Source: Mizuhopecten yessoensis (lineage: Eukaryota). From it: DNA of 64,000 bases. The notes beneath the pieces were generated by a model. The model saw nothing but the letters and a program-made list of their open reading frames with translations, made no database searches and was not told where the DNA came from. Where the stretch lies: contig NW_018403589.1 in assembly GCF_002113885.1 (NCBI RefSeq), forward strand, positions 787,678 through 851,677, written 5' to 3'. The translations under genes were made by a program, and so were the position numbers. How positions within the stretch are numbered: position 1 is the first letter of the stretch; each line of letters opens with the position of its first letter. Positions 27,709 to 58,662 of this stretch are shown one piece after another.

Positions 27709-27738
27709 ATGGAAGGTTACGATCGGATACCGGCATTT
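27709..27738 (+). CDS. Putative first coding exon of module A (MEGYDRIPAF), spliced to 32869
   Basis: gtcATGG Kozak-like context; 10 codons, then canonical GTAAGT donor at 27739 in phase 0; joins in frame to the phase-0 acceptor at 32869, giving MEGYDRIPAFVSGGLDTYRRDRF. Confidence 0.6.
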
Positions 27739-28821
27739 GTAAGTATATACAGTTGTTGATAATTCAAAAAGATAAATTATTTGTAAACGGTTATTTGTAA
27801 ATATATAAAGATTCGGTTAGTTATGAATTCAAAAAGATAAATTATTTGTAAGTTTATAGTTTAAGTTATTTGTAAGAATAGAAAACTTCAGCTATTACCC
27901 AAAGTTATGTGTAAGTAAATAGACAAGTGTATGTCTTCTGTGATAAGACCTTGATCTGAAATAAGGGATTCTATTCATCATTTATATAAAAATATTGATA
28001 TCTTGCAGGTATGACTTTTTTGCCTGTTGATTTAATTTCACTTTTAAACATAAATTAACGTTCAAAATCAGTACATTTTGTTTGACACACGTTATTTAAA
28101 CTTAAAGAGCAATATTTTGATGATATGATTTCATAGACATCGAATTACAAATCACAAAAACAAATGAAGTCAGAATCGACAATTTGTATGTAAAGTTCAT
28201 CATCAAAATCTTTGGCCTAACTTCATACAATGATTATATACCAATGAGCCTTTTTTAATTCATCATGCCAGTTTCGGGAACTTTCTATGGCGCCGACAAT
28301 AAGAAACGTTCCACATGGGAACTCTGACGGCTGATTCGTACCATGTTATTATATTTGGTCTTTTGGCGATTGAATACGAAACGACGATATCTATTGTTAA
28401 AATACTATGATAGAAACATTTGAATTGTAATAATTGTGACGTATACGATGTCGATACGTTTTTAACCTAAACCGTTAGTAGTGCAACCTTTGTAGATTAA
28501 TATCGATTTTGGTCAATGTTTATTTTCAACAAGGGGTAAGTTAATCCTTTCCATGCCGCTGAAACTATCGTCAAGTGAACGGCCGTCTAATTTCAATATA
28601 TGCCCTACCACCTCGTTATAATCACTTATGATCTCGTGAAGTGAAAACCGGAAGTGGTTTTGGGATCAGTGTCTGTCTTGGTAGTTGCACATACGGAGAC
28701 CAAAATCGCCCAAACTGTTGTTATACAAACTATGCATGATGTTTGGAAGATGATGATGAACCGGAAGTTGAAAATAATATTTCTTTAATAATGATTCTTC
28801 CAATTTGGGAAGACAGCATTA

Positions 28822-28978
28822 CAGGGCCCGTATATTCATGAAACCGTTCTCATGCTCAATCATGGATTTTGTGTTCAAACCAACTTATTTATTAATTTCT
28901 TATCAGATCAATATGTTAGGCATGGGCCAAATATCCATGCTTGACCGTGAGAACGGTTTCATGAATATACGGGGCCTG
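28822..28978. mobile_element. PIF/Harbinger-like MITE with TIRs CAGGGCCCGTATATTCATGAAACCGTTCTCA
   Basis: Left and right termini are reverse complements. A longer, left-truncated copy of the same family follows at 29044-29290 (ends gcatgagaacagtttcatgaatac). Superfamily call is inference. Confidence 0.7.
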
Positions 28979-30538
28979 TAATGCTGTCTTCCCAAATTGG
29001 AAGAATCATAATTAAAGAAATATTATTTTCAACTTCCGGTTCACGAAACCGTGCTCAAGCATGGATTTTGTGCTCAAGCTTAATTTCTTGTTCTGGTTAT
29101 AAATTCATAAACAAATCATATTTTGCCAAAGGTTTGCAAACATTTTGAAGAGACTTGACCCTGAATACTGTTTTCAATGTTTACATTTGACATTTTAATC
29201 GTTTGACTTGATTTAAGTGAGTAACAAGAATGTTGGTTTCAGCACAGACTCCATACTTGAGCATGAGAACAGTTTCATGAATACAGACTAGGCTGCAATT
29301 GCACCCACTAATGTTAACCATTTACGTTACACTAATAGACGATACTGTAAATTACAATGTTCTGTATCGACAATGCCAACCACTGGTGTAACCAAGGTTA
29401 CTGTAGTGGTAGTTGACATGTAAGCATATTCACCACTATTTGTTTTACCATGGTAAACGTGGTAAGGATTTGAAACAAACCTCATACATACATTCTAATA
29501 TCGCTTAAGAAAGACCTTCAGTTTCGGGGATCATTAGTTTGTTCGGGTTTAACGTCCTCACAAGAGCTAAGACCATATGAAGACGGGTACCCGGGGAGAT
29601 ATTACCGGGAGCAATCAGTGGGGAAGCACGAGAAAAGAATATACAGATATCCAAAGTTTGACAATAAGGGCAGCACTAATACATATTATTATGTGTCTAG
29701 GAAAGGCTCATAAAAGAAGACTCTAGATCCTTCAGGGGGCCATGCTAGTCACCTATTGAAGAATTATTTCACTAAACCTGCAGGACTTACAAGGATTACA
29801 ACTTATTAAACGCAAAACCCTGACAAACAACACAGACACATATACATGGTTGACCTCTTTTATGTTTAAACGCGAAATACGGTGTAATAAATAGACTCAG
29901 TTTTAGTTTATTTATTTCTGAGAGCCAGCCGACTCATAGGTTAAATATCAAACCATTACATCATGTAGTACATGTATATCGAAATTATGTATACAAATAT
30001 AAACTAATAAGTGGAGAGTGAGCTTACAAAGTACATGGGTAGTTTTTCATATCGGACATTGATTTCTCTACGTTTTCTCGTAGCACAATTTAAATATGCA
30101 CTCGTACAATCTGAGACGTCAGATGAACACTTTTATCACATAATGTACTGTGTTATCCAGTGAATATACCAATGTCATATTTTTTTGCGTATTAACCCAT
30201 GTAATATTACCTATCAGCCCTGTGAATAGTTGTAAGCTTCAATTGTTTCAATTGTGACGTCACGCCTAGGACAAGTACATGACGTCACAGGCTAACGCAC
30301 TTAAGTCAAAATGGCGACTTTTTACATTTCGAGGTTGCATAAATGATGACGTTGTACACGAGTAAATGCCACAAATCTTGGTTATGTGATAAAAAGGATC
30401 TTACACTCGTTTTCATTTGATATGAAATGGAAACTCCTGTCAGATCCTATATATATGTGATATATTGTCTATTTATTACATACCTGTTACATACCAATTG
30501 TATTATATATTTTGCAAAACATTTTGCATCATTACTCC

Positions 30539-30735
30539 GGGCCGCGGCGGCCGAGTGGTTTTCTTCGATCACTAGCCCTCCACTGAGTCGCAGGTTTGAG
30601 GTCTTCGTGGGGGCAGTCGTCATGTACCGCCCGCAGGTCGGTGTGTTTTCTCCTGGTGTTCCGGTTTTCCTTTTCGACCAAAACCTGACTTGTTTTTAAA
30701 AGACCATAGATGTTAATAACCGTATTAAGTTCAAT
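30539..30735 (+). mobile_element. V-SINE-like tRNA-derived SINE
   Basis: Head ggccgcggcggccgagtgg (A-box), cactagccctccac, degenerate B-box ggtttgagg, V-domain-like ttttctcctggtgttccggttttcc. Same family at 50816-50950. Confidence 0.7.
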
Positions 30736-30924
30736 TTGCTTTCTGGAAAATTGAACCGAAAAAACAATGGCGGACAAAACGACGCTAATGGCGTAATAAC
30801 GATGTCACGTAGGGTTAAATGACGATACAATATTCGGAAAACCCTAATTGTTTAAACTTTTCGATTTGATGAGTGAACAACAAGAGATAAATTCCTGCCA
30901 AATTACTTCGGCTAGTTGTAGATA

Positions 30925-31255
30925 AATAAATAAATAAATATACAACATTTGATATAGCGCCCTATCTAGCTAACATAAACCACTCTAAAGCGCTTTACAG
31001 TACATAGATAGACAATTGTAAACAGTCAATACAATTAGCATATATATTCATCAATACAATAATGAGGAATTCGTCGGAGCTGCCTTATCAGGCGCTAACT
31101 ACTAGTCCTATGCCACCTGGCTAATATCTCCCTATGTGCGTATGCCTGTTTTCGTGCTGGAGATGTATTGTGTTCCGTTTGTAGTGGGACCGTACTTCAA
31201 ACGGTATCATTTACAGTGCCACCTCACTTGAATGCTACAGCACAGATACCAATAA
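30925..31255 (-). mobile_element. SINE with Meta-like plus Deu-like domains and L2/CR1-type tail (MD-SINE-like), 5'-truncated
   Basis: Minus strand reads ttcaagtgaggtggcactgtaaa...ttagcgcctgataaggcagc...tgtaaagcgcttt...ggcgctatatcaaat...(ATTT)n. Confidence 0.65.
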
Positions 31256-32868
31256 CTTGTATTATCTCACTGTGAAATGCAGCAACTTTTATTACATGGC
31301 TTAAGGACTGGTTGTAACTGTGTATTAAGGTTCACCCTGCTCCTGGGTATGTACAAAATATGTATGGTCAACAACTTAAGTGAAGTCAGCGGCCATCGAA
31401 TCAAAGCCGTTCTTTGATAACTGTTTATCAATTTATTTATTTCTGTATATATTTTTAATGCAAAGATATTAACGAAACACATTCCGCCAATCTTAGTCAC
31501 TTGAACGATTTATTGAAAGCGATTCATGGTGTTATTAAAAGCGGATTACCAAGTATAATGATGTCAAATATAAACATGGCGTCATTACCAAACGAGGTAG
31601 GCTCTGTTGGTGGCGCTCGAAATAGTCTCGTTCGTCGTTAGATCATAACAATAAAAAGGCGGGAAAAAATACGTACAAAACAATTAATTTCGTATTTTCT
31701 TATGAAACCCACGCATTTTATTATCGTTCAGTATACATGTCGATGACACATGCTGATTTAAACAGAAATTAGTAGGTTTCTGCGTGCGTTACTATTGCCT
31801 TTCTTTCAGTGTTGACTCACTTTGCTCTTGTTATCTACTTAGTCACAACTTAACAAGAATGGTTTAACTGCATGACTGTTCTATTTTATACAACGAGTCT
31901 TAAACTGAGGCTGGTTTCTGGTCTATAAGCATTACTTAGGGTTTAATATGGTCCTAAATGTCCCTCATATTTTCATACTTTGCACATAGTCTTTTTATTT
32001 TAGTTTATATATAAAAAAAATGCCGTTATTTTTTTTTATTTATTTGATTTTTCTCCTTCTCTGGCTTTGTTTAGAATTTGGTTAAATAACATAATAGCTA
32101 AAACGACGGAGTCCACGCGTTGCTACCGACATCCCAATCTGACTGTACGTATCCCCGCACCGGTCTTAATTCCTCACATATTGTTAGAGTGACATAACAC
32201 TGCACTTACTTGAAATATACGAAGAAATCTTCCAGTTTATCAATCCTAAGTGCTCTGTATGACTTGTGGAAATGTGGATTGTCTTATGTGAGAATTTGGA
32301 CCAAGATACGGAAATATAAAGACTCGAGCTCCGGTCCGAGTTCCCGGTGATAAATCGTGCTTAATGTTTTCTGGTGTAAATCCGCTAATACTCGGCTTGT
32401 AGTAACACATTCATCGGTGGATTATTGGGGTCCTGGTCCGCTCCAGTACCTCCGGTTACTGATTGAAATTGATGAACACGAAATATGTCATTATTTTGCA
32501 ATGAATGTCGTGTAATAATTGAAACTGAATCTGGACTAGCCTGTTAGACGTACGGGAGACAAGGCAATCCCCAGTCGTTATTATCAAACCCAAAGTGTCA
32601 CAATATCTCTATTTCGTATTCATTAAAAATCAATTGTCGACAGTCAATTCCGTCCTACGTCATTGTCCATAGTTAATGTGCTCCACTACAAATAAAAAGG
32701 ATACAATTTATTTGCCCTTACTCATAAAAAGGAGATTTTCCGAGGATCAACGCGGAAATTTATGTAGAAATTATATAACTTATTCGATTTTAATCACGAA
32801 CTGGTGGTTTGGAGCCGGGCTATAATATCGTATCGGCGTTTTCATTGAGATATTGTTTTGTTTTATAG

Positions 32869-33798
32869 GTTAGCGGTGGCCTTGATACTTACCGCAGAGA
32901 CCGATTTTATAGCGAGAAACAGAAGTATAAACAGTTGTTAGCCTCGCACGAACGTAAAAAGGAGAGGTACAAAAGACGGGACAAACACGCCAAACACAAA
33001 CAGTTCGGACGACCGGACGACATAGTCAGAACCGGAAGTGAGGAGGAAAATGAAACGCACGTCCGACAACGGAGGAACACGCGTAAAAGGAGCATGCGCA
33101 AACGTGACGATGAATTAATGGCGTCAATTGAGCGCCGGGAGAGGATCTTACGCATACACATGGATAGAATGAACCAGCATTACTTGTCCCCTACAGATAC
33201 AAAGGTGCCTAGTGAATATTCGTATAGGTCGTCTTTCCAGCAAGAGTCAAATGATTACCCGTCATACACTCGAACACAAATGGCTGAAACCGGTCGTCCG
33301 CTTTATCGATACATGGAGCCCGTTAATAGACCACCCCAATATCCCGTGGAACCCGAACAGCGCCCATTACATGCGGGACAGTCTGAACTTCCGGTAATCC
33401 CGACCAAGCCGAAGTATTATACACACATTCCACTCCCAGAAAATGTAGAAAGTGAAAGACAACCGGTATTGGAGAACGAACGCGAGGATGCCCGCCACAA
33501 ACGAGCCTCTGTGTTAAACAGGGTGGAGAAACTGCTAAACGATATGGACAGACAAATGAACGGAGGAGAAATTATTTTAAAATCCAAAGCAAAACGTAGT
33601 AGAAAAAAGTTTATAAAGAAAAAAGAGGATACGGATTCCGGAGATGACAGCTACGTGTTCGTGAAGACAACTGTTACGCCGACGCCGCCTCCTTACTCGG
33701 AGTCCCACTCCGATGTAGATGTATCCCTCCCAAGTCTCCCCGCCAGCTCCCTGGGTCCACAGATAGTGTCGAGGATGTCATTTCCGTCCGGAGTTAAG
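32869..33798 (+). CDS. Large coding exon (310 codons) of module A; basic/charged then Pro/Ser-rich, predicted disordered; no recognisable domain
   Basis: Polypyrimidine tract with acceptor ttgttttgttttatag|32869; open frame (ORF 32935-33870 extended upstream); donor AAG|GTAAGA at 33799; phase 0-0; GC richer than flanks. Confidence 0.82.
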
Positions 33799-33989
33799 GT
33801 AAGATACAGTAGAATTAAAACCATATGTATACCATTGTACATGACGTATTCAAAATACATCAGCAGATAAGTTTAACCGGATGGAGTCAAATAGATTGTG
33901 AAGTAATCGAACTGAATCCATGATTAAACATAGAAATATTTAAGAGTTTAATTCTGAGAATTATTATATCATTATTGAAGTTGGATTAT

Positions 33990-37393: not shown

Positions 37394-40300
37394 TACATTG
37401 TCGGTAGAGAGCAGTATGTCAACATGGGGACACAAACTTTTGAAGGTCTTTATTATACATTGACAGTAAAGAGCAGTATGTCAACATGGGGACACAAACT
37501 GTTAAATGTCATTATTATACATTGACAGACGAGAGCAGTATGTCAACATGGGGACACAAGCTGCTGAATGTCTTTATTATACATTGACAGTAGAGAGCAG
37601 TATGTCAATATGAGGATACAAGCTGTTGAAGGTCTTTCTTATACATTGACAGTAGGGAGCAGTATGTCAACATGGGGACACAAGCTGTTGAATGTTTTTA
37701 TTATATATTGCGGTAGGGAGCAGTATGTCAACATGGGGACACAAGCTGTTGAATGTTTTTATTATACATTGTCGGTAGGGAGCAGTATGTCAACATTGGG
37801 ACACAAGCTGTTGAAGGTCTTTATTATACATTGTCGGTAGGGAGCAGTATGTCAACATGGGGACACAAGCTGTTGAATGTTTTTATTATAACATAACTTG
37901 ACAGTAGAAAGCAGTATGTCAACATGGGGACACAAGCTGTTGAATGTCTTTATTATAACTTGACAGTAGGGAGCAGTATGTCGACATGGGGACACAAGCT
38001 GCTGAAGGTTTTTATTATACATTGACAGTAGAGAGCAGTATGTCGACATGGGGACACAAGCTGTTGAATGTCTTTATTATACATTGACAGTAGAGAGCAG
38101 TATGTCAACGGTCTTTATTATACATTGACAGTAAAGAGCAGTATGTCAACATGGGGACACAAAATGTTGAATGTCTTTATTATACATTGTCGGTAGAGAG
38201 CAGTGTGTCAACATGGGGACAAACGCTGTTGAATGTCTTTATTATACATTGACAGTAGGGATCAGTATGTCGACATGGGGACACAAGCTGTTGAAGGTCT
38301 TTAGTATATATTGTCAGTAGAGAGCAGGATGTCAACATGGGGACACAAACTGTTGAAGGTCTTTATTATACATTGTCGGTAGAGAGCAGTATGTCAACAT
38401 GGGGACACAATCTGTTGAATGTCTTTATTATAACTTGACAGTAGGGAGCAGTATGTCGACATGGGGACACAAGCTGTTGAAGGTCTTTAGTATATATTGT
38501 CAGTAGAGAGCAGGATGTCAACATGGGGACACAAACTGTTGAAGGGCTTTATTATACATTGTCGGTAGGGAGCAGTATGTCAACATTGGGACACAAGCTG
38601 TTGAAGGGCTTTATTATACATTGTCGGTAGGGAGCAGTATGTCAACATTGGGACACAAGCTGTTGAAGGTCTTTATTATACATTGTCAGTAGAGAGAAGT
38701 ATGTCAACATGGGGACACAAACTGTTAAATGTCTTTATTATACATTGTCGGTAGAGAGCAGGATGTCAACATGGGGACACAAACTGTTGAATGTCTTTAT
38801 TATACATTGTCAGTAGAGAGCAGTGTGTCAACATGGGGACACACGCTGTTGAAGGTCTTTATTATACATTGACAGTAGAGAGGAGTATGTCAACATGGGG
38901 ACACAATCTGTTGAAGGTTTTTATTATACATTGTCGGTAGAGAGCAGTGTGTCAACATGGGTCCACAATCTGTTGAAGGTCTTTATTATACATTGTCGGT
39001 GCGAGCAGTATGGCAACATGGGGACACAAACTGTTGAATGTCTTTATTATACATTGTCGGTAGAGAGCAGGATGTCAACATGGGGACACAAACTGTTGAA
39101 TGTCTTTATTATACATTGATAGTAGAGAGCAGTATGTCAACATGGGGACACAATCTGTTGAAGGTTTTTATTATACATTGTCGGTAGAGAGCAGTGTGTC
39201 AACATTGGGACACAAGCTGTTGAAGGTCTTTATTATACATTGTCAGTAGAGAGCAGTATGTCAACATGGGGACACACGCTGTTGAAGGTCTTTATTATAC
39301 ATTGACAGTAGAGAGGAGTATGTCAACATGGGGACACAATCTGTTGAAGGTTTTTATTATACATTGTCGGTAGAGAGCAGTGTGTCAACATGGGGACACA
39401 AGCTGTTGAATGTTTTTATTATACATTGTCGGTAGGGAGCAGTATGTCAACATTGGGACACAAGCCGTTGAAGGTCTTTATTATACATTGTCGGTAGAGA
39501 GCAGTGTGTCAACATGGGTCCACAATCTGTTGAAGGTCTTTATTATACATTGACAGTAGAGAGGAGTATGTCAACATGGGGACACAATCTGTTGAAGGTT
39601 TTTATTATACATTGTCGGTAGAGAGCAGTATGTCAACATGGATACACAATCTGTTGAAGGTCTTTATTATACGAGCAGTATGTCGACATGGGGACACAAG
39701 CTGTTGAAGGTCTTTAGTATATATTGTCAGTAGAGAGCAGTATGTCAACATGGGGACACACGCTGTTGAAGGTCTTTATTATACATTGACAGTAGAGAGG
39801 AGTATGTCAACATGGGGACACAATCTGTTGAAGGTTTTTATTATACATTGTCGGTAGAGAGCAGTGTGTCAACATTGGGACACAAGCTGTTGAAGGGCTT
39901 TATTATACATTGTCAGTAGAGAGCAGTGTGTCAACATGGGGACACACGCTGTTGAAGGTCTTTATTATACATTGTCGGTAGAGAGCAGGATGTCAACATG
40001 GGGACACAAACTGTTGAATATCTTTATTATACATTGACAGTAGAGAGCAGTGTGTCAACATGGGGACACAAGCTGTTGAATGTCTTTCTTATACATTGAC
40101 AGTAGAGAGCAGTATGTCAACATGGGGACACAAACTGTTGAATGTCTTTATTATACATGTATACATTGACAGTAGAGAGCAGTATGTCAACATGGGGACA
40201 CAAACTGTTGAATGTCTTTATTATACATGTATACATTGACAGTAGAGAGCAGTATGTCAACATGGGGACACAAACTGTTGAATGTCTTTATTATACATGT

Positions 40301-42338
40301 ATACATTGACAGTAGAGAGCAGTATGTCAACATGGGGACACAAACTGTTGAATGTCTTTATTATACATGTATACATTGACAGTAGAGAGCAGTATGTCAA
40401 CATGGGGACACAAACTGTTGAATGTCTTTATTATACATGTATACATTGACAGTAGAGAGCAGTATGTCAACATGGGGACACAAACTGTTGAATGTCTTTA
40501 TTATACATGTATACATTGACAGTAGAGAGCAGTATGTCAACATGGGGACACAAACTGTTGAATGTCTTTATTATACATGTATACATTGACAGTAGAGAGC
40601 AGTATGTCAACATGGGGACACAAACTGTTGAATGTCTTTATTATACATGTATACATTGACAGTAGAGAGCAGTATGTCAACATGGGGACACAAACTGTTG
40701 AATGTCTTTATTATACATGTATACATTGACAGTAGAGAGCAGTATGTCAACATGGGGACACAAACTGTTGAATGTCTTTATTATACATGTATACATTGAC
40801 AGTAGAGAGCAGTATGTCAACATGGGGACACAAACTGTTGAATGTCTTTATTATACATGTATACATTGACAGTAGAGAGCAGTATGTCAACATGGGGACA
40901 CAAACTGTTGAATGTCTTTATTATACATGTATACATTGACAGTAGAGAGCAGTATGTCAACATGGGGACACAAACTGTTGAATGTCTTTATTATACATGT
41001 ATACATTGACAGTAGAGAGCAGTATGTCAACATGGGGACACAAACTGTTGAATGTCTTTATTATACATGTATACATTGACAGTAGAGAGCAGTATGTCAA
41101 CATGGGGACACAAACTGTTGAATGTCTTTATTATACATGTATACATTGACAGTAGAGAGCAGTATGTCAACATGGGGACACAAACTGTTGAATGTCTTTA
41201 TTATACATGTATACATTGACAGTAGAGAGCAGTATGTCAACATGGGGACACAAACTGTTGAATGTCTTTATTATACATGTATACATTGACAGTAGAGAGC
41301 AGTATGTCAACATGGGGACACAAACTGTTGAATGTCTTTATTATACATGTATACATTGACAGTAGAGAGCAGTATGTCAACATGGGGACACAAACTGTTG
41401 AATGTCTTTATTATACATGTATACATTGACAGTAGAGAGCAGTATGTCAACATGGGGACACAAACTGTTGAAGGTCTTTATTATACATTTTCGGTAGAGA
41501 GTAGTATGTCAACATGGGGACACAAACTGTTGAATGTTTTTATTATGCATGTATACATTGACAGTAGAGAGCAGATTGTCAACATGGGGACACAAACTGT
41601 TGAATGTCTTTATTATACATGTATACATTGACAGTAGAGAGCAGTATGTCAACATGGGGACACAAACTGTTAAAGGTCTTTATTATACATTGATAGTAGA
41701 GAGCAGTATGTCAACATGGGGACACAAACGGTTGAAGGTCTTTATTATACTTTGTCGGTAGAGAGCAGAGTGTCAGCATGGGGACACAAGCTGTTGAAGG
41801 TCTTTATTATACATTGTCAGTAGGGAGCAGTATGTCAACATGGGGACACAAGCTGTTGAAGGTCTTTATTATACATTGTCAGTAGGGAGCAGTATGTCAA
41901 CATGGGGACACAAGCTGTTGAAGGTCTTTATTATACATTGACAGTAGAGAGTAGTATGTCAACATGGGGACACAAACTGTTAAAGGTCTTTATTATACAT
42001 TGACAGTAGAGAGCAGTATGTCAACATGGGGACACAATCTGTTGAAGGTCTTTATTAGACATCGTCGGTAGGGAGCAGTATGTCAACATGGGGACACAAT
42101 CTGTTGAAGGTCTTTATTAGACATTGTCGGTAGGGAGCAGTATGTCAACATGGGGACAAAAACTGTTGAATGTCTTTATTATACATTGACAGTAGAGAGT
42201 AGTATGTCAACATGGGGACACAAACTGTTAAAGGTCTCTATTATACATTGACAGTAGAGAGCAGTATGTCAACATGGGGACACAAACTGTTGAAGTTCTT
42301 TATTATACTTTGTCAGTAGATAGCAGTATGTCAACATG
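37394..42338. repeat. Satellite, 62-bp unit (GACAGTAGAGAGCAGTATGTCAACATGGGGACACAAACTGTTGAATGTCTTTATTATACATT) with an internal homogeneous block of a 70-bp variant (~40100-41470)
   Basis: About 75-80 copies; 70-bp units carry an 8-bp duplication (TATACATG TATACATT); degenerate monomers continue to ~43350. Confidence 0.97.
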
Positions 42339-42349
42339 TTAACATCACT

Positions 42350-42925: not shown

Positions 42926-42941
42926 GTAACATATATATTAC

Positions 42942-43252: not shown

Positions 43253-44565
43253 GTTGATTATCCTTATCATACAATTGTAAGCAGACAACAGTATTACAAC
43301 ATGGACACATCGATAAATCACAAAATTGTCGATTATCCTTACCATTCATTACAGCAAGGGTAAACATTCATATTGGGACTGACAACAATAACAAGGGACA
43401 CTAAAAATACACCAAAGGAAACTGAATAGTAAAAACCGTATTCAGAATTACGCAGCGAAATGGTTAGATATCATTATAACAATTTTTTAATATTTCAAGT
43501 CTTGCGGTATAGACCAATTTTACGTAATTGTGATATATTAATGGTACAGAACAATGATTTCATATTAGAACTACATCAGATTTTCCTCGAATCTGTCTCA
43601 AAAAGGAACATTCGATTATGTGCGAGGAACAGTTTGACAAAGGGCTGATCCTTTCCCCAGAGTAGGAACGCATGCGATATATATATCCTATGCGAAGCAT
43701 TGAGAGGACGACCTTCTTTCTATGGGAATTTTGAACCCACCGTAGGTTGAATAAGCAAACTACGATGATTGTAACATAAAACAACAATTGCGTGTCTGTT
43801 CGCCTGAGATACAAAGGAAACTATTGAATTTCAACCCGATCTGGTTTATAGTTTTTCTAACCCCAGGAAATCACTAAGTTACGTGTATAATCATCATAAT
43901 AATTCTACCAGGAAAATTAGATATACTTCATCTTTACAACGCTTGAAAATGAACCTAAGGTAAAGAAACGGAAGGTTCACCGCATTCCGGACGTGTCTGA
44001 TAATATAGATGGCGCTGTCATAAAGTATAATGTTATAATGCATTGTCATACTATTGTGGCTTTGTGTTTCATAATGTAATATTGATATAGTTGATATACT
44101 GATGAATGACTCCATTTAGATTGATACATATGCTGTACGCTACCGGATGCTGCCTTATTATGGTGGCGAATGACACGTTTATAAACATGGTCAATAATTC
44201 ATCTGTTTTGTAGGAGGGATGCGCTACGATGCATGATTTCATAGCATAACAGATCGAAGGATGATATTGAGGTTGTCGGACTAATGATAATAATAAGGCT
44301 TATTTTGAAAAACGTACTGAGCGTTACTGGTGAAACGGTGTAAAAAAAAGACTAGGTTCGAAGGATGGAGTTATAGCAAAACCATTTATACGTACATGAA
44401 TATTTAATATCTGCTCAAGGAAAAAGAAGATATAAACGTCAACTTTCAAAGGATATAAACACCATGTACAGTAAATAACAAACAAAACATAATTGTGAGC
44501 TTAAAGATTGGACGTGCTTGCATTTCTAACGGAAGTTACCGAATAAACCAGGAAGTGACATTTTT

Positions 44566-44664
44566 ATGGCGTACGACAAGTACAACTCCCGCGTTGTGTT
44601 CGGACCGATGCGTTCGTACAGAAGTCAGCTATACGGAAGTAACTCATCGTTCAATACTCACGAG
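44566..44664 (+). CDS. Putative alternative first coding exon, module B (MAYDKYNSRVVFGPMRSYRSQLYGSNSSFNTHE)
   Basis: ATGG start with upstream in-frame TAA at 44527; 33 codons, GC-rich; GAG|GTAGGT donor in phase 0; candidate UTR acceptor tctgttttgtag|44214. Confidence 0.55.
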
Positions 44665-45454
44665 GTAGGTATCCGCGGTGCAGCTTTCCTCACTTTAAGT
44701 CTATTCTAAAGGATGCAGCAGCACTGGGGCGGTACTAAAGTCTGGAATTTTCTCCCNCCCCCCCCCCCTTTTTTTTTGGCGGCGGACTGACCTTTTCCGG
44801 GCTGGCCCGAAATGGTCTGATCGGCCGGGAAAGATGCATAATTATATTATTGACCGCTCGTTATAAAGATGATCTGAAAATTGATACTTTTTATTGTCAT
44901 CTTCCTAACCGCCCGGGCGATATTAATCATATCATTATACAAGAACGATAAAGTTTTTTTTCGGCTGACAATATTTAGTGAATGAGTCAACAATTATAAA
45001 ACGCGAGACTATATAGCTAGTGGACTTAATTGGGTGTCGCACTGATTTGAACTTATCCGTTTGTTTAGCAACTTAGTGATGCCAAGAGTAACTCATTAAT
45101 TAAACAGCAACGATGTTATGGTGTTATTTGTTCTTTTGTACGACAAACTATTACATGAAGTACTGTACTGTAGGTACAATGTCTGAAGACTAGATATTGG
45201 GCGTCCCTACACCTATTTTTTGACGGTGGACCTCTCGTATCCCCCTTGCGGGCGGGACGCCAAATTAGGTAATAATGAACAAGCCCCCTGTGGATTCAAA
45301 CATTTGTCATTACCAGGTTGCCCCTATAATAATACCATCTGACTTCTAAAACACGCTGTTGATAGAGAATTTGAACCGAAACTTTAATTTTCTTTCCAGT
45401 ACACAAAGTCTTTGGGTCATACTTAAAATATGCTTTTTTCTTCTTGTTAATTAA

Positions 45455-45683
45455 ACATAAAAACAATCCTCAGAACACGGGAAATCGCTTCTGAGACGTT
45501 CTAGAAAACACAGTTTTTGGGGGGAGATCCCCAGATCCCCCATTCCGGCAGGGGGAAGACCCCCTCCCGTACCCTCCGCCTCCTCGCGCTACGCGCTCGG
45601 GGTGCTACCTTCCGCACCACACCGTTGACCATTGAGAAAAATTTCTCGGCCCCTCCATTCAGGAAATCCTAGATCCGTCCCTG
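45455..45683. mobile_element. Non-autonomous DNA transposon right end
   Basis: GC-rich hairpins (gggggagatccccagatccccc; ggggaagacccc) ending gaaatcctagatccgtccctg, resembling the common CAGGGGCGGATCCAGG-type TIR (recalled). Confidence 0.55.
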
Positions 45684-45737
45684 GTCGCCTTCATATTTCC
45701 TCAGCTTACCTTGTATGTTTCTTCGTTATAACATACA

Positions 45738-45963
45738 GCAACAATACCAAGTACAGGGGCTTAAAGCCTCATTTTAATACTTGCCTCTCGTACGTACCTC
45801 AATAATACATTGTTCAGGCCGATTCAACCTCGTTTTAACACAGTGAGTCGTGCGGTCCTCAATAATACCCCGTACTTGGCTATACAGACTCGCTTCAACA
45901 TCTCTCTATCGTGCGGTCCTCAATAATACCATGTATATGACAATACAGCCTCGTTTTAACATC
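45738..45963. repeat. Degenerate ~60-bp tandem repeat, ~4 copies
   Basis: Recurrent cctcaataatac...cctcgttttaaca...tcgtgcggt. Confidence 0.7.
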
Positions 45964-46726
45964 GTACAAAGGTGAACTTTATTCAACGTAAAGTACAATT
46001 GTTGATTTCGTTTAATCAACAAGAACCAGGTTCAAGCGTTCTATAAATTGTAACACTCCTTTTAACGAGGACAAATGTACTGGACATGTGTTCAGTGTTA
46101 ACAGAGGGCCGCAATAGCGGGGTGGTATTTGTTCACGGTTGACGATACATTACAAGACCGGAAATGACACGACCGGAAATGTTGTTTGTGTAGTATGAGA
46201 GTAGTACTCCTACTCTGAATATACTTCACATAAAGCTTAAACTCGTTCTTGTTTATTTTAACTATTTAATGCAAATGATAATTTTAAGAATATCAAAATA
46301 GAAAAATATGTTTTTGACAATACAATTATATATATGAAGAGGTATTGGAATTTTAACATTCTAGAAACTGTTAATTAATATTGACCCACATTTGAACTGA
46401 CAGTACTTTGTACTGTACACCTTTCCTATTTAACAGGATGTGGTATTATTTACAGACGTTTTGAATGCCAAAAGTACGTATAATCATTTCGTTGTTCTCG
46501 CCCTTTCTCCTCACCATTTCGGTTGTACCCTAACACGAGAAAGGTCCCCGTCAAATTGTGGGAATGTTTCACATTTCGCGACTTGTTGGAAATATGGGTA
46601 CAAAGTACCATGGCTTATTACCTTACGCTTATTTTCTTACCTGAAGTCAATTATGAAAAGATATCGATTGTTTTTGAATGTGTAGTTTAAACAAAACTCA
46701 TCCTAAGGAGGAGAAAAAGTCGGGAA

Positions 46727-48769
46727 ATGTCACGACATATGTTAAGAAGTACAAGGGAAGGAGATTCTGGCTCAAGGACTCTTCCTACTTTGTACAAACA
46801 ACGCTTAAAAAGCGCTCGGAAACGAAGTGAGAAAACACGGAAACAGGAAAGTTATCGAAAGAGTGACCAGGGAAAATATATTGGTGCAAAATCGTCTGAA
46901 GGAAACTTCATTACACCAAGTTTTAACTTGAATAATACAGATTGGATTTCGCCAAAATATCAACCCGAAAATGATCATGACTTACATAGCTCAAAGACTG
47001 GGATAACTAGAAGCAAGACGGTGTCAACTCAGACCCAGAGACCAAGACTACTTCAAAAACAGATAATTCACAGATACCGGGACGTGACTAAGAGATTTCC
47101 CGAGAATTACACACCCGAATCAAAACATCTAGTGAAAGGTTCTGATTTCAAAACAGAAAACAAGTTTAAAACGTCTAAACACAAGTTCACCTCTACAATG
47201 GACCAAATGAGAAAAGACGAAACGAGCATGGAAACAGTAGACATGGCAACGTCCGCCACTGATATATCTGAACAATCCGTGACAGATAAACAATCAACAA
47301 AGTTAGATGATAGTCAGGACAATGTTGTTCTTAACACAGTTCAACAACCTGATATAAATAGCCATGGTGACCCAGCAGCAGCTGGCATTGAGATGGTACC
47401 AAGGAGGAGAAAGGGTAAGACGTCCAAGAGCTATTCGGTGGCCTTTGGATCTACCGTAGGGTTCAATCCTCTTGTAATGGAACATTCCAAACGTAAACAA
47501 CGCCACAATGTACGCGTTCTTCAAACGAAGATTGTAAGACCAAACATTGCAGTGACTAAAGCAAAACGTAACGTGAAATCGAAAAACAAGAAGTCCAAAG
47601 AAATCCTTGGAAGTGTCTCAACAATTTGTGGTGAAACACAAGATTCCGTAAATCTACCTGAATTGGAGAGAAAGGCCATCGACAGATCACGTGACCAAAA
47701 CATAGCTCGCTACGTCAGCTCAGTACCTCTCCGAGTTGACCGGGCCACCTCGATGTCTGACGTCACTAGCACGTCAGTCGGCATCACTGCTGAAAAGCCA
47801 ATCACTTCATCAGCATCGACACCATTGGCATTTCATTCTTTTCCTAAGTCACGTGGTATAAATGATACCGTTGCAAATGTAAGGTCCTTTGTTTCCGTGC
47901 GACCCAAACGTTCTACTGACAGGGATGTCCTCGATAGAGAGCTAAACGTATTTAAAGCGCTTGACCCCAATAGGAAAAATGATGTGGAATTATTCAGAAG
48001 TGAATTAACGGACCACGAGGAACATGAAGTGAGTAATTTGTCAGGAAGAAAGTTCCCACTAGCGACTCAATCCGCCAAGGTAAAGGTTCTGAAAGAACTC
48101 AACAAGAACAGGTCGTTCCTGGATACCGATAGTGTAGCAGGGTATAGTTTAAGTCGCCAAAACACATTGTCGTCTTCACATCTGAAGATGGAGACAAGAA
48201 ATGTATCTTCAGACGTTAGAACCTCATCTAGGCAAGATCAACTTAACATCACAAGTGATATTTCCAGCAACGATCAGCGTTATTTAATTCACGATGATAT
48301 CAGGGCTAATAAATACGGACAGGACCGAGCAAACGTTGTCTCGAAATACGGGAAAACGTCGAAAGCAGCTGCTATAGTCATGCCAACAGTTCGTGTCAAT
48401 CGGACACCGGAAATGGTACCGCGCATGAGCCAGGGGGTACGTTCATCAATGAAAAACTCCACAAACATCAGCCAAACCACATCCGGTAACAGTCCGATCA
48501 TAGAAATAACAAGAGAAGGGGCCATACCTGTACTGCCCGAGTCGACGAGCCCGAGGCAGCTGTCGCATGCGTCAAAGTACCCTACTGGTTATTTGCATAA
48601 CCACGCAAAGACATCAACTATCTCACTTCCCGGAAGTATAACGACTCTTAATTCAGTGAATACGCCGATGCCTGTACGCAAACAATATATATCGAATAGA
48701 ACCATGAACGACAGTTTCGTATTATTCGACGGATATGACGTCAGACGTTGGGAAACAGTGACTCCATTA
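46727..48769 (+). CDS. Very large first coding exon, module C (681 codons); Ser/Thr/Lys/Arg-rich, predicted disordered; no recognisable domain
   Basis: 2.1-kb open frame in AT-rich DNA; in-frame TAA at 46688 upstream of ATG; GTAAGT donor at 48770 in phase 0 (…WETVTPL|), after which the ORF runs into AT-rich intron-like sequence; candidate UTR acceptor ctttcctatttaacag|46437. Confidence 0.85.
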
Positions 48770-50815
48770 GTAAGTTGGTCCCTTTTCCCAATTGTAACAA
48801 ATGCGCTGATCATTATATATTATACACCATTCATATTTTTAGTTTTGTAATTAGTTCAGTTTGTAATTAACATTTAAAGTTGTTGTTTGTTGAAACGACA
48901 AAACGATGGCTTGCTGTACCACGTCTACTGAAACACAGATATAATTATGATGGCTGGCTCAGTGAGACGATTTGTGACTGCCTACAAGTATTATTGATTT
49001 TTGTATCAGATAACAGCTGTAGTTGATAAATTATTTATAGAATTTAGTAATAACGACACCCGACGTAGGCTATACTATGTAGACATAATTTATGATGAGT
49101 ATCTATAAACGTTTCAGGTGTTGGTATCAGGACATCCTATCAGTGTTGTCCATCCAATATCCCCTTGTTAAAGTATTCCCCCTCCAAACTAATTATTTCG
49201 GGTGGAGGTAACTGATTGAACGAATTGTTAAACAGGATTTTTTATCAATCTTATCCTGACAACCTCACTTAATAATTCACAAATTAAGGATTACCGGTCG
49301 TTGTTGAGTCTGTAACAGAACATAACTCAAGACCCCTTTATTAGATTTTTAAGATTATGTCTGGATAAAGTGTCAACTTCTTACTCTCACTGGGACAGAC
49401 ACATTCCATAGATATATGTATGTAGTCAGTATAAGTAATGTAACTCAGGTAGATTCTCATAGCTGTCATCAAAATGATCGGAAACATACTTAGTATGGTC
49501 TTTAAAACCTAATATAAACTATTCATGCGCCTACAATATCACTATATATATATATTTCCATTGTCACTGTTCTAAACAACCATTATAATCACCGCTACAG
49601 GTTTGGGAACAGAATAATTAGACCTTCTATTTGCCACTGCATGTCATTTTCAATAGACAGGGGTTACGCTTGCGTAGCCCCTGGGTATCGAGACAGACTG
49701 CATGTACACATGCACGTAAGCGGCGGTTTAGGTAGACCCCTTCACATTCATGGGTGTTCTTCCTGTCAACTTATTAGGGGACATCATAAAACCCAAATTA
49801 ATCTTCTGCCATCATTGCACCTCCTGATAGCTATGTCTTTTCTCTTATTCCTGTTAATAGGTAGACAAACTGACACACACTAATGTGTCGAGCCCCTGTG
49901 TCTATTCCCACGTGCATTATATCAACGTTTCGAACCCCTGTGACTATTCCTATGATCAATCTAATAATGTGTCGAACCTCTGTGTCCATTTCCACGTTCA
50001 TTATATTCAACTTTTTGGAACAATGTGACTAGTCCTTGGACTATTTCTGCACTCATTAAATATGTTACACCCGGTTACCTTGTTTAATTATACGAAAACA
50101 TCAAAATAATTCAACGGCAACTCTCTAGGGACGAAATGTGATACAGCTAGGCTGCTAATGGGTCTCTTATCCACCGAAGCACACATTATTGTCTAAAATT
50201 ATTGTCACCGATACAGTATATTGTGTTTTCTACTGAAACATATTTGTTAAGTTCGTTTATCAATGTTTATGATGATTTATTTTATACCAAGCTCATTCGT
50301 TAAAGCATAGTTTTTAAATTCTGTCAAAGTGAAAAATAAAACTTTTCCTCACCGACTGAAATTTACATCGACTCGTCGATATACCGAAAAACTATCTTCA
50401 AATTTTCAAAATCTGTTAAAATGGTGAAAAAAAAAAAGTTGTAAGACACATTTTAAAGCAAGCCATTTTACAGGTACAATCTGTCCAACTGGTTGTATCT
50501 TGTACATGTTAGATGTAGCCGGCCTTTTACTGGAACAACCTGTCCAATTGGCAGTGTCAATACATGCATTTTGTATAGGTTAGTTGTAACCAGTCATTGT
50601 ACATGACTAGTATCGGGGAAAGATCCGCCTTTTATGAAGAAGGGACATCGTAAAGACCAGCAGAATTGATATCTGTTATCCCTATACTCTATTGTCTGTA
50701 TCATACGATATATTACTGTTGTTATACTCGAATGCTCTCCATCCTGTAGTGTGCCTTATGAGACTCATCGCTATATCTCCATGTGCTACTTTTATTAGCA
50801 GCTATGATCATTTAA

Positions 50816-51710: not shown

Positions 51711-54700
51711 CAGCCCTAATGGTTAATGCAGTGTATGTACAGGTATACCAGCCCTAATGGTTAGATCAGTTTTTGTACAGGTATACCAGCCCTAGTGGTT
51801 AGATCAGGGTATGTACAGGTATACCAGCCCTAGTGGTTAGATCAGTGTATGTACAGGTATACCAGCCCTAATGGTTAGATCAGTGTATGTACAGGTATAC
51901 CAGCCCTAGTGGTTAGAGTAGTGTATATACAGGTATACCAGCCCTAGTGGTTAGATCAGTGCATGTACAGGTACACCAGCCCTAGTGGTTAGAGCAGTGT
52001 ATGTGCAGGTATACCAGCCCTAGTGGTTAGAGCAGTGTATGTACAGGTATACCAGCCCTAGTGGTTAGAGCAGTGTATGTACAGGTATACCAGCCCTAGT
52101 GGTTAGAGCAGTGTATGTACAGGTATACCAGCCCTAGTGGTTAGAGCAGTGTATGTACAGGTATACCAGCCCTAGTGGTTAGAGCAGTGTATGTACAGGT
52201 ATACCAGCCCTAGTGGTTAGAGCAGTGTATGTACAGGTATACCAGCCCTAGTGGTTAGAGCAGTGTATGTACAGGTATACCAGCCCTAGTGGTTAGAGCA
52301 GTGTATGTACAGGTATACCAGCCCTAGTGGTTAGAGCAGTGTATGTACAGGTATACCAGCCCTAGTGGTTAGAGCAGTGTATGTACAGGTATACCAGCCC
52401 TAGTGGTTAGAGCAGTGTATGTACAGGTATACCAGCCCTAGTGGTTAGAGCAGTGTATGTACAGGTATACCAGCCCTAGTGGTTAGAGCAGTGTATGTAC
52501 AGGTATACCAGCCCTAGTGGTTAGATCAGTGTATGTACAGGTATACCAGCCCTAGTGGTTAGAGCAGTGTATGTACAGGTATACCAGCCCTAGTGGTTAG
52601 ATCAGTGTATGTACAGGTATACCAGCCCTAGTGGTTAGAGCAGTGTATGTACAGGTATACCAGCCCTAGTGGTTAGATCAGTGTATGTACAGGTATACCA
52701 GCCCTAGTGGTTAGAGCAGTGTATGTACAGGTATACCAGCCCTAGTGGTTAGATCAGTGTATGTACAGGTATACCAGCCCTAGTGGTTAGAGCAGTGTAT
52801 GTACAGGTATACCAGCCCTAGTGGTTAGATCAGTGTATGTACAGGTATACCAGCCCTAGTGGTTAGAGCAGTGTATGTACAGGTATACCAGCCCTAGTGG
52901 TTAGATCAGTGTATGTACAGGTATACCAGCCCTAGTGGTTAGAGCAGTGTATGTACAGGTATACCAGCCCTAGTGGTTAGATCAGTGTATGTACAGGTAT
53001 ACCAGCCCTAGTGGTTAGAGCAGTGTATGTACAGGTATACCAGCCCTAGTGGTTAGATCAGTGTATGTACAGGTATACCAGCCCTAGTGGTTAGAGCAGT
53101 GTATGTACAGGTATACCAGCCCTAGTGGTTAGATCAGTGTATGTACAGGTATACCAGCCCTAGTGGTTAGAGCAGTGTATGTACAGGTATACCAGCCCTA
53201 GTGGTTAGATCAGTGTATGTACAGGTATACCAGCCCTAGTGGTTAGAGCAGTGTATGTACAGGTATACCAGCCCTAGTGGTTAGATCAGTGTATGTACAG
53301 GTATACCAGCCCTAGTGGTTAGAGCAGTGTATGTACAGGTATACCAGCCCTAGTGGTTAGATCAGTGTATGTACAGGTATACCAGCCCTAGTGGTTAGAG
53401 CAGTGTATGTACAGGTATACCAGCCCTAGTGGTTAGATCAGTGTATGTACAGGTATACCAGCCCTAGTGGTTAGAGCAGTGTATGTACAGGTATACCAGC
53501 CCTAGTGGTTAGATCAGTGTATGTACAGGTATACCAGCCCTAGTGGTTAGAGCAGTGTATGTACAGGTATACCAGCCCTAGTGGTTAGATCAGTGTATGT
53601 ACAGGTATACCAGCCCTAGTGGTTAGAGCAGTGTATGTACAGGTATACCAGCCCTAGTGGTTAGATCAGTGTATGTACAGGTATACCAGCCCTAGTGGTT
53701 AGAGCAGTGTATGTACAGGTATACCAGCCCTAGTGGTTAGATCAGTGTATGTACAGGTACACCAGCCCTAGTGGTTAGAGCAGTGTATGTACAGGTATAC
53801 CAGCCCAAGCGGTTAGAGCAGTGTATGTACAGGTAAACCAGCCCTAGTGGTTAGAGCAGTGTATGTACAGGTATACCAGCCCTAGTGGTTAGAGCAGTGT
53901 ATGTACAGGTATACCAGCCCTAGTGGTTAGAGCAGTGTATGTACAGGTATACCAGCCCTAGTGGTTAGATCAGTGTATGTACAGGTATACCAGCCCTAGT
54001 GGTTAGAGCAGTGTATGTACAGGTATACCAGCCCTAGTGGTTAGATCAGTGTATGTACAGGTATACCAGCCCTAGTGGTTAGAGCAGTGTATGTACAGGT
54101 ATACCAGCCCTAGTGGTTAGATCAGTGTATGTACAGGTATACCAGCCCTAGTGGTTAGAGCAGTGTATGTACAGGTATACCAGCCCTAGTGGTTAGATCA
54201 GTGTATGTACAGGTATACCAGCCCTAGTGGTTAGAGCAGTGTATGTACAGGTATACCAGCCCTAGTGGTTAGATCAGTGTATGTACAGGTATACCAGCCC
54301 TAGTGGTTAGAGCAGTGTATGTACAGGTATACCAGCCCTAGTGGTTAGATCAGTGTATGTACAGGTATACCAGCCCTAGTGGTTAGAGCAGTGTATGTAC
54401 AGGTATACCAGCCCTAGTGGTTAGATCAGTGTATGTACAGGTATACCAGCCCTAGTGGTTAGAGCAGTGTATGTACAGGTATACCAGCCCTAGTGGTTAG
54501 ATCAGTGTATGTACAGGTATACCAGCCCTAGTGGTTAGAGCAGTGTATGTACAGGTATACCAGCCCTAGTGGTTAGATCAGTGTATGTACAGGTATACCA
54601 GCCCTAGTGGTTAGAGCAGTGTATGTACAGGTATACCAGCCCTAGTGGTTAGATCAGTGTATGTACAGGTATACCAGCCCTAGTGGTTAGAGCAGTGTAT

Positions 54701-56848
54701 GTACAGGTATACCAGCCCTAGTGGTTAGATCAGTGTATGTACAGGTATACCAGCCCTAGTGGTTAGAGCAGTGTATGTACAGGTATACCAGCCCTAGTGG
54801 TTAGATCAGTGTATGTACAGGTATACCAGCCCTAGTGGTTAGAGCAGTGTATGTACAGGTATACCAGCCCTAGTGGTTAGATCAGTGTATGTACAGGTAT
54901 ACCAGCCCTAGTGGTTAGAGCAGTGTATGTACAGGTATACCAGCCCTAGTGGTTAGATCAGTGTATGTACAGGTATACCAGCCCTAGTGGTTAGAGCAGT
55001 GTATGTACAGGTATACCAGCCCTAGTGGTTAGATCAGTGTATGTACAGGTATACCAGCCCTAGTGGTTAGAGCAGTGTATGTACAGGTATACCAGCCCTA
55101 GTGGTTAGATCAGTGTATGTACAGGTATACCAGCCCTAGTGGTTAGAGCAGTGTATGTACAGGTATACCAGCCCTAGTGGTTAGATCAGTGTATGTACAG
55201 GTATACCAGCCCTAGTGGTTAGAGCAGTGTATGTACAGGTATACCAGCCCTAGTGGTTAGATCAGTGTATGTACAGGTATACCAGCCCTAGTGGTTAGAG
55301 CAGTGTATGTACAGGTATACCAGCCCTAGTGGTTAGATCAGTGTATGTACAGGTATACCAGCCCTAGTGGTTAGAGCAGTGTATGTACAGGTATACCAGC
55401 CCTAGTGGTTAGATCAGTGTATGTACAGGTATACCAGCCCTAGTGGTTAGAGCAGTGTATGTACAGGTATACCAGCCCTAGTGGTTAGATCAGTGTATGT
55501 ACAGGTATACCAGCCCTAGTGGTTAGAGCAGTGTATGTACAGGTATACCAGCCCTAGTGGTTAGATCAGTGTATGTACAGGTATACCAGCCCTAGTGGTT
55601 AGAGCAGTGTATGTACAGGTATACCAGCCCTAGTGGTTAGATCAGTGTATGTACAGGTATACCAGCCCTAGTGGTTAGAGCAGTGTATGTACAGGTATAC
55701 CAGCCCTAGTGGTTAGATCAGTGTATGTACAGGTATACCAGCCCTAGTGGTTAGAGCAGTGTATGTACAGGTATACCAGCCCTAGTGGTTAGATCAGTGT
55801 ATGTACAGGTATACCAGCCCTAGTGGTTAGAGCAGTGTATGTACAGGTATACCAGCCCTAGTGGTTAGATCAGTGTATGTACAGGTATACCAGCCCTAGT
55901 GGTTAGAGCAGTGTATGTACAGGTATACCAGCCCTAGTGGTTAGATCAGTGTATGTACAGGTATACCAGCCCTAGTGGTTAGAGCAGTGTATGTACAGGT
56001 ATACCAGCCCTAGTGGTTAGATCAGTGTATGTACAGGTATACCAGCCCTAGTGGTTAGAGCAGTGTATGTACAGGTATACCAGCCCTAGTGGTTAGATCA
56101 GTGTATGTACAGGTATACCAGCCCTAGTGGTTAGAGCAGTGTATGTACAGGTATACCAGCCCTAGTGGTTAGATCAGTGTATGTACAGGTATACCAGCCC
56201 TAGTGGTTAGAGCAGTGTATGTACAGGTATACCAGCCCTAGTGGTTAGATCAGTGTATGTACAGGTATACCAGCCCTAGTGGTTAGAGCAGTGTATGTAC
56301 AGGTATACCAGCCCTAGTGGTTAGATCAGTGTATGTACAGGTATACCAGCCCTAGTGGTTAGATCAGTGTATGTACAGGTATACCAGCCCTAGTGGTTAG
56401 ATCAGTGTATGTACAGGTATACCAGCCCCGGTGGTTAGAGCAGTGTATGTACATGTATACCAGCCCTAATGGTTAGATCAGTGTATGTACAGGTATACCA
56501 GCCCCGGTGGTTAGAGCAGTGTATGTACATGTATACCAGCCCTAATGGTTAGATCAGTGCATGTACAGGTATACCAGCCCTAGTTGTTAGATCATTGTAT
56601 GTACAGGTATACCAGCCCTAGTGGTTAGAGCAGTGTATGAACAGGGATACCAGCCCTAGTGGTTAGAGCAGTGTATGAACAGGGATACCAGCCCTAGTGG
56701 TTAGAGCAGTGTATGAACAGGTATACCAGCCCTAATGGTTATATCAGTGTATGTACAGGTATACCAGCCCTAGTTGTTAGATCAGTGTATGAACAGGTAT
56801 ACCAGCCCTAGTGGTTATAGCAGTGTATGTACAGGTATACCAGCTCTA
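51711..56848. repeat. Satellite, 38-bp unit (CAGCCCTAGTGGTTAGAKCAGTGTATGTACAGGTATAC), ~135 copies, with 76-bp alternating G/T dimer over ~52500-56330
   Basis: Period 38 (tagtggttag at 52021 and 52059); near-identical copies; strict agagcag/agatcag alternation. Confidence 0.98.
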
Positions 56849-58407
56849 TATGTAATCAATGGCATGTTTTATGCACGAGTAGAGAAGGACCCAACACCTG
56901 GGATATAGGTACTGAACATTCACCTACGACTACACATACACATAAACAAAAACAGAGGTATTTGTTGTCGGTAGAGCGACCATATTAATTAAATCGCAGG
57001 CACAGCCAACGTTTTTGTTTTACTACCAGTGTTTGATTAGCACTGCATGGAAACCGGGATAGTGTGAAGCTTGCTGTAGTTATTGATACAGAAGTTAGTG
57101 ATTTACTGCCCATTCTGGATAGACTTGTAATCTAAATTCAAAATAGAAACAAAAGTGAAAAGGATAAATGTTCTATTATCATGTTCAATATCAGTGCATA
57201 ATAAGTGTTTCTAACTCAACTGACCAAAATGAGATTTTTTTTATTTTATTTTTAAATGATAATAAAAAAATATATAGAATGAATAAACTCTTTAAAATTA
57301 ATAACACTATTTAAAAAAAAAAAAAAATACACTGAGTAGATCATTTATAAGTAGGAAAACTTTTTTTCTTCAAATGAGCAAGACAACGTGTGCTTTTAAA
57401 GTTTTAGTACCCTAGTAATGACCGGAAATGTATATCGAAAATCTCCATAAAGGATAATGCACTTATCGTTAATAGTATCACTTTTTTCCTCTTCAAAATA
57501 TGAGGCAGAGCGTATCATTAGAAAATAGCTACAGTCTGTAGTACCACCAGGATAATATTCAAACGTTCACCTTTACTGGAAACCATAACAAACACAGGGG
57601 GTGTTTTAATCAGGAAAAGAATGCGTTCATCAACCTCGGTCTGACTCTCCACGTGAAGTCGATCTGTTACCTAGTCTCCAAGCCAACTATAACCCTGTAT
57701 CAGTTATGTCGTAGACTTGCCCATTGTTTCTCAGTGGTATCACCCTTTATTTCGTTGTAATTATTCATGACAATACAATATCTACAACTACCACACAGCC
57801 AGTACCACATATCGTCCTTTTTATGACACGACAGATTCCCCTAGCAACAATAGCATCCTTTCCTCCGCATCATCAGATCTACCTATAAATTGCTAATGAA
57901 GAAATCGACTTCTTGCCCCGAACCCATCGATTGTTCCAAATGAACACGAAAGATAGGTACTCGCGTGCACGTTGTGGTCATTCTGCATGTGAAATACCTG
58001 AATAGTGTGTGTATTGGAATTACTTTTAGAGTAACCTTGTCGTTGGCTTTTGACATAGAACATGACTGATGCCCTAGTGAGTGGGAAGACATTTTATAAA
58101 CCATTGTTGGAGAGTACATACAACTAACAATACAGGTAGTCTCTAGATAACTCATACTAACAGGAGGGAAGGAATGTAACATCACGTGGTTAGGTTAACT
58201 GCTTCTAGACATTTTAACTTTCCTTACATTAATGTGTCATGGAGGATATATCAATTTAGAACCGTTGTGATTTACATGACTAGGAAAGGGAAATAAGTGT
58301 GTTTTTGTTTGTAAGAAAGTTACAATAACATTGTACCTGCTCTATACAAGTATCTAGACAATCGTCGATGGTAAATATGTGAGAGGGCTTTCAAAATCTG
58401 TGGAACA

Positions 58408-58662
58408 ATGAGTCTCAACCGGAAACCTTTAAAGGATTTAGAGAAAAACAGTGTGGAGCCCGTAAAAGTGACAAGGAGGGCCTCTAAACAGTCAGTGAAC
58501 AGTATAGATGTGAGAAATGGTTCAAAAGTACCAATATTGAGTAAACAGATTTCCAAACGTTATGTTACCGGAGATTATGAGTCTGGTTCTCACAGAGGAA
58601 GTGTCATAAACAGTCATGATACCGGAAGCGCATCTGCCGAAACTGATATTCCGGAAGCCTAC
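58408..58662 (+). CDS. Putative alternative first coding exon, module D (85 codons, MSLNRKPLKDLEK...ETDIPEAY)
   Basis: acaATG context, upstream in-frame TAA at 58372; Ser/Lys-rich frame; TAC|GTAAGT donor at 58663 in phase 0. Confidence 0.75.

Follow-up and report, generated by a model that had tools for sequence, protein, structure and literature searches.

What are several unrelated protein-coding starts doing side by side on one strand of a scallop genome? The question is raised by a 64,000-nucleotide (nt) stretch of Mizuhopecten yessoensis DNA (RefSeq assembly GCF_002113885.1, contig NW_018403589.1, positions 787,678 to 851,677; hereafter the window), in which a sequence-only reading had picked out four ATG-initiated modules (A to D, between positions 27709 and 58662) and had taken them for interchangeable N-termini of one gene, with a shared domain encoded downstream. 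We consider it very probable that this region is the 5' part of a single gene of ~86 kb, encoding DCX-EMAP (a protein that binds microtubules), in which at least five alternative first coding modules are joined to one phase-0 acceptor. Positions are given in window numbering, which was carried on into the 80 kb of sequence fetched beyond the window ('full' coordinates), and a slash marks a splice junction.

Alternative first coding modules and their common acceptor

All four modules lie on the + strand at the positions where the sequence-only reading had placed them, each opening with an ATG and ending in a phase-0 donor. The count of four proved incomplete, as a fifth module (E) was found beyond the window, and so was the predicted shared part: a phase-0 constant exon with a DCX domain.

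Module A, exon 1 (A1): 27709-27738, + strand; MEGYDRIPAF, 10 amino acids (aa), phase-0 donor gtaagt; residues 1-10 of RefSeq isoforms X1-X3 (P0163, P0001)
Module A, exon 2 (A2): 32869-33798, + strand; 310 aa, basic and disordered, acceptor ttttatag/, phase-0 donor gtaaga; residues 11-320 of P0001/P0163
Module B, first exon: 44324-44664 (coding sequence 44566-44664), + strand; 33 codons, phase-0 donor gtaggt, 5' untranslated region (UTR) of at least 242 nt; N-terminus of isoform X4 (P0164)
Module C: 46727-48769, + strand; single exon of 681 codons, phase-0 donor gtaagt; found in no M. yessoensis gene model
Module D: 58408-58662, + strand; first coding exon of 85 codons, phase-0 donor gtaagt; found in no M. 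yessoensis gene model
Module E: full 72116-72184, equal to contig 859793-859861 (L009:8116-8184), 8.1 kb beyond the window; 23 aa, ATG.../gtgagt; N-terminus of isoform X5
Common phase-0 acceptor: full 80926, 16,926 nt beyond the window end; ttatttttcag/AGT
DCX exon: full 80926-81654 (L010:6926-7654); 243 codons with a Pfam DCX domain, acceptor at contig position 868603

The length of every module is a multiple of 3, and every donor is therefore in phase 0. As had been noticed from the sequence, B, C and D are preceded by in-frame stops (TAA, 39, 39 and 36 nt upstream of the respective ATG), and between stop and ATG no pyrimidine-rich phase-0 AG acceptor was found in any of the three. A chance origin of the A2 and C frames is excluded, because they stay open for 333 and 719 codons and are the sole open reading frames (ORFs) longer than 150 aa in the window. 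B and D (the latter open for 126 codons) are too short to be judged by length alone, and draw their support from the gene model, RNA contigs and orthologues. The modules were presumed not to be paralogues of each other, which agrees with an all-against-all BLASTP of A to E that returned no match better than E = 1. Each of modules A to D is single-copy in the genome (a 987.6-Mb assembly of 82,659 contigs), and we therefore rejected a transposon or repeat origin. Pfam assigned A to D to no family (an ALMS_repeat match with E 0.07 and 13 bits was dismissed as noise), and an Rfam scan of 27-64 kb likewise found none.

The gene was identified through its constant part. Databases were queried with stored proteins or single exons, never with a joined spliced model, and the A1 and A2 translations were concatenated only for local BLASTP against fetched proteins. 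A representative search with the DCX exon led to P0001 (RefSeq XP_021353447.1, 1295 aa, isoform X3), with 100% identity across residues 321-563; residues 1-320 of this protein are exactly A1 plus A2, followed directly by the DCX exon. The 90% cluster of P0001 supplied the isoform set, which consists of four different proteins of one gene:

Isoforms X1 and X2 (P0163): 1327 aa, identical in encoded protein; A plus the constant part, with a 32-aa cassette present
Isoform X3 (P0001): 1295 aa; A plus the constant part, cassette absent
Isoform X4 (P0164): 1040 aa; B plus the constant part
Isoform X5 (P0162): 1030 aa; the 23-aa N-terminus MADRDHQIGRYVDENLHIENLSV (module E) plus the constant part

In a junction alignment all of them (X1-X5) enter the constant part at .../SEIQYAYSDEE. 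A, B and E thus share a common junction in M. yessoensis, and these three of the five starts are in the public annotation of the species; C and D are annotated only in sister scallops.

For B the junction is also present in RNA contigs. Four runs of unspecified tissue were aligned to positions 44001-50000, a stretch that holds B and C. In contigs of two of these, from different studies (run X5, on record as RNA-Seq, and run X2, guessed to be RNA), the match to the genome stops at 44664 and the sequence goes on as AGTGAAATCCAATACGCC..., which are the opening bases of the DCX exon after the acceptor at full 80926. B thus passes to the constant exon directly, leaving out C, D and (by coordinates) E. 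Before it passes into the DCX exon, the run X5 contig (1636 nt) follows the genome without a break from 44324 to 44664, which gives B an unspliced 5' UTR of no less than 242 nt. The convergence of donors on one acceptor, which the sequence-only reading had anticipated, thus holds for 44664 in the RNA contigs and for 33798 in the RefSeq isoforms that carry A.

In the same alignments the summed contig depth rose to as much as ~1,570 over a stretch of the B-C intron (44600-45600), against 3-11 for the gene itself; this stretch is rich in variants and loose ends, and its behaviour resembles that of a dispersed repeat with high expression.

The arrangement that we propose would spread modules A to E over 44.5 kb, each with its own ATG and phase-0 donor, and each would be spliced, to the exclusion of the others, to the phase-0 acceptor of the 243-codon DCX exon. 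The product would be a constant core carrying one of five unrelated and mostly disordered extensions (23, 33, 85, 320 or 681 aa). Exclusive use agrees with the models and contigs, none of which joins two modules, and we infer that each module has its own promoter. The outcomes that would have spoken for another arrangement were not seen: there were no separate terminal exons, B is transcribed and D is conserved.

Conservation of the modules across scallops

Orthologues were compared by local BLASTP of the module translations against fetched proteins, followed by junction alignment. The idea that the peptides are isoform N-termini of one bivalve protein was borne out for A, C, D and E, which match scallop DCX-EMAP isoforms:

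Module A: N-terminus of Argopecten irradians X3, 67% identity (A2); more distantly, N-terminus of Mytilus edulis X2, E 3e-18
Module C: 548-aa N-terminus of A. irradians X1/X2, 31% over 555 aa, E 4e-56
Module D: residues 1-86 of Pecten maximus X1-X4, 64%; Ylistrum balloti, 62%; A. irradians X4, 56%
Module E: A. irradians X5, 70%

Module B had no match outside M. yessoensis among the fetched orthologue proteins. In all matched scallop isoforms the junction with the constant part falls at S[ED]IQ, the same residue as in M. yessoensis, and the orthologues of D in P. maximus, Y. balloti and A. irradians read ...PE[AV]Y/S[DE]IQ across the junction. Orthology thus places C and D in the same use in sister scallops, apparently under purifying selection. 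A further Argopecten protein (P0172, Logan-derived) holds the C-terminal part only and is therefore uninformative on junctions.

The order of the modules, compared in P. maximus only, is kept: tblastn located C at 681-2576, D at 10001-10258 and E at 18134-18202 of the orthologous locus (L020), where the DCX exon comes next at ~30,378. The C of P. maximus (43% identity over 670 aa, in one frame) is an unannotated ORF upstream of D. Downstream of the M. yessoensis gene, at full ~119.2 kb (L014:5189-5326), the next gene opens with a PDZ-like N-terminus (MADGSIPILLRRFDTSQPWGFKMQGGVD), and a PDZ-domain gene stands at the matching relative position in the P. maximus locus, so that synteny is kept as well.

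At the DNA level the similarity between the two species is confined to islands, namely C, D and a block upstream of D, E together with the preceding ~184 nt, and the DCX exon. Those over exons stop within a few bases of the donors (that of C at 48776), and the island at 58397-58670, with the D coding exon 73% identical to P. maximus, brackets the D exon exactly. The block upstream of D (57665-58037, 370-740 nt before its ATG) is non-coding, 78% identical at the matching P. maximus position and contains TATAAA at ~57885; it is possibly the promoter of D or its 5' UTR/leader. Beyond these, the two species share only a 70-nt block ~0.9 kb before the DCX exon and two short intronic stretches, both of which match the same Pecten site and probably represent a repeat. 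With dS ~1 throughout, the Nei-Gojobori ratio of nonsynonymous to synonymous divergence (dN/dS) falls from 0.40 (C) through 0.20 (D) to 0.05 (DCX exon). These values point to purifying selection that acts less strongly on the extensions, a usual finding in disordered regions.

Beyond the scallops, the orthologues of Mya, Mactra and Dreissena have long N-termini, but a profile comparison found no relation between these and C (probability 0.1%). N-terminal variation in this gene is widespread among bivalves, but the modules differ between lineages.

Alternatives and the standing of modules C and D

Several observations weigh against the proposed arrangement. We found no M. yessoensis protein model with C or D, and a junction from 48769, expected by the sequence-only reading, was not seen in the four runs over 44001-50000. 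In these runs the depth over C is low and flat (3-8) and extends into the introns on both sides, and one run X2 contig continues colinear across the C donor. As to separate promoters, a colinear 5' UTR is seen for B alone, and the end of a contig is not in itself a start site. Furthermore, the C frame of P. maximus (L020:2560-2637) is open for 682 codons and meets the conserved gtaagt in phase 1, its last ~17 codons being homologous only in the phase-0 frame; the offset may come from a 1-nt assembly error or from a real frameshift, with C decaying in that lineage.

Taken at face value, the absence of C and D from the RefSeq models, the read depth over C (like intron background) and the contig that reads through its donor would suit relict exons, C and/or D being used in other scallops while only A, B and E work in M. 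yessoensis. We hold this to be unlikely: the frames of C and D are intact in M. yessoensis (719 and 126 open codons), ATG and gtaagt donor are kept, and dN/dS lies below 1 at dS ~1. Moreover, only four runs were sampled, and the gene is likely limited to certain cell types.

A scheme in which all modules depend on a single promoter or non-coding leader upstream, and splicing selects one of them to the exclusion of the rest, also seems improbable. Variation in the 5' UTR does exist, as isoforms X1 and X2 encode the same protein; but the B contig is colinear for 242 nt upstream of the ATG without an acceptor, good acceptors are missing just upstream of the ATGs of B, C and D, and D and E are each directly preceded by conserved non-coding sequence, as would be expected of promoters.

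That C might be a separate single-exon gene inside a DCX-EMAP intron is suggested by its ORF, which runs 26 codons past the donor to a stop (707 aa, 46727-48850), and by the run X2 contig colinear across 48769. Against this, no 707-aa protein of this ORF is on record, the P. maximus DNA similarity ends right at the donor, the orthologous module of A. irradians is joined to the DCX exon, and a conserved motif (LFDG[YF], the last in C) runs up to the donor; we regard a separate gene as very improbable. A word search with C alone gave no match, which is accounted for by its length window of 375-1192 aa and by the absence of C from the M. yessoensis models. Finally, a serial transcript with A, B, C and D in one mRNA was rejected because of the upstream in-frame stops, the missing acceptors and the B-to-DCX junction.

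The constant core, its extensions and known counterparts

Judged by its sequence, the gene is the M. yessoensis orthologue of DCX-EMAP, the one-to-one orthology with Drosophila CG42247 being taken from the RefSeq name only ("echinoderm microtubule-associated protein-like CG42247"). Its coding region spans 27709 to full ~113,648 (roughly 86 kb), and the constant core amounts to 975 or 1007 aa. Pfam on the exons downstream of the window gave DCX and EML propeller matches, the exons at full ~108.9-113.2 kb matching the second EML beta-propeller. In P0001 the domains are arranged as follows:

DCX domain (PF03607): residues 406-459, 38.2 bits (cut-off 22); lies ahead of HELP and replaces the EML coiled coil
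Second DCX-like repeat: residues 528-570, weak match only (12 bits, E 0.22), below the Pfam threshold
HELP motif (PF03451): residues 668-707, 29.3 bits (cut-off 27); ahead of the propellers
Beta-prop_EML (PF23409): residues 715-998, 292 bits (cut-off 88)
Beta-prop_EML_2 (PF23414): residues 1018-1286, 246 bits (cut-off 90)

The 32-aa cassette (GQKRTAPSSNSSNESVASRGSRQKKMQKSFDY) is encoded at full 91546-91641 (L011), after the DCX region; it is included in isoforms X1, X2, X4 and X5 and skipped in X3.

Long tandem arrays occupy parts of the introns between the modules. The A2-B intron holds a satellite of ~5 kb (37394-42338; 62-bp unit, ~77 copies, 89-91% matches), to which the repetitive ORFs at 37.5 and 41.3 kb and the strong local GC skew are due. 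The C-D intron contains a very homogeneous array of 5.1 kb (51711-56848; 76-bp unit equal to two ~38-bp subunits, 67.6 copies, 98% matches) with a GC content of 0.46 and a GC skew of +0.2, and a third array, again with a 62-bp unit, follows D (59544-61498), broken by a run of N at 59808-60159.

The layout has familiar counterparts. In genes of the plectin/PDE4 type several ATG-bearing, non-paralogous first exons, spread over tens of kb, are spliced in the same phase to one common exon and so share a constant body. In the clustered protocadherins and UGT1A, tandem paralogues serve as variable first exons; they carry the code for the main functional domain and are spliced to constant exons. Variable first exons joined to constant ones are common to the scallop gene and the latter pair, but the scallop modules show no mutual similarity and encode mostly disordered extensions. 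The layout is closer to plectin/PDE4 because the modules are not paralogues, with the differences that the scallop gene has only five of them and that its separate promoters and any targeting by the N-terminus are presumed. Alternative first exons are a commonplace mechanism, and what we describe is an ordinary gene layout conserved across scallops.

In Drosophila, DCX-EMAP (CG42247) is a microtubule-associated protein of mechanosensory cilia (PMC2892299, PMC10471123). The fly protein (819 aa) has the same domain order as that of the scallop, with doublecortin, HELP and EML WD40 propellers, and the fly gene also yields a variant without its first exon (PMC2892299), which loses the first DCX domain. 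In contrast, the scallop gene keeps its core constant and varies the 23-681 aa ahead of it, while its second DCX repeat falls below the Pfam threshold. Long disordered extensions ahead of the fly DCX domains are not described in the two papers (PMC2892299, PMC10471123).

Disorder-promoting residues make up ~72% of A, C and D, which are rich in lysine/arginine and serine/threonine. The AlphaFold model of C, in which the mean predicted local distance difference test score is 37.6 and helices are few and isolated (the best spans residues 21-50), agrees with disorder and falls short of proof, because the alignment behind it is shallow (3 sequences). C nevertheless retains short conserved blocks, such as YSVAFGSTV, ARYVSSVP.LVDRSTSMS, LNVFK.LDPNRK.DVEL and KYGK.AA.VMPTVR.

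With the gene named and its architecture settled, two conserved first coding exons (C and D) are added beyond the M. yessoensis annotation. The unrelated N-termini A, C, D and E form a set conserved across scallop genera, while B was found in M. yessoensis only. A literature search found no paper on scallop DCX-EMAP isoforms. We reason that the extensions would set the cell type, subcellular address or partners of the microtubule-binding core. More tentatively, the five unrelated extensions (four of them conserved across scallops) might serve as address labels that direct this core to one or another cell type, ciliary structure or microtubule structure; if so, the targets could be such structures as mechanosensory cilia, the ciliary photoreceptors of the mantle eyes and sperm flagella, and C (681 aa) would supply further binding sites in the form of its short conserved motifs and a basic helix. 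As fly DCX-EMAP serves to organise mechanosensory cilia, the isoforms offer a handle for asking which ciliated cells of the scallop use which form.

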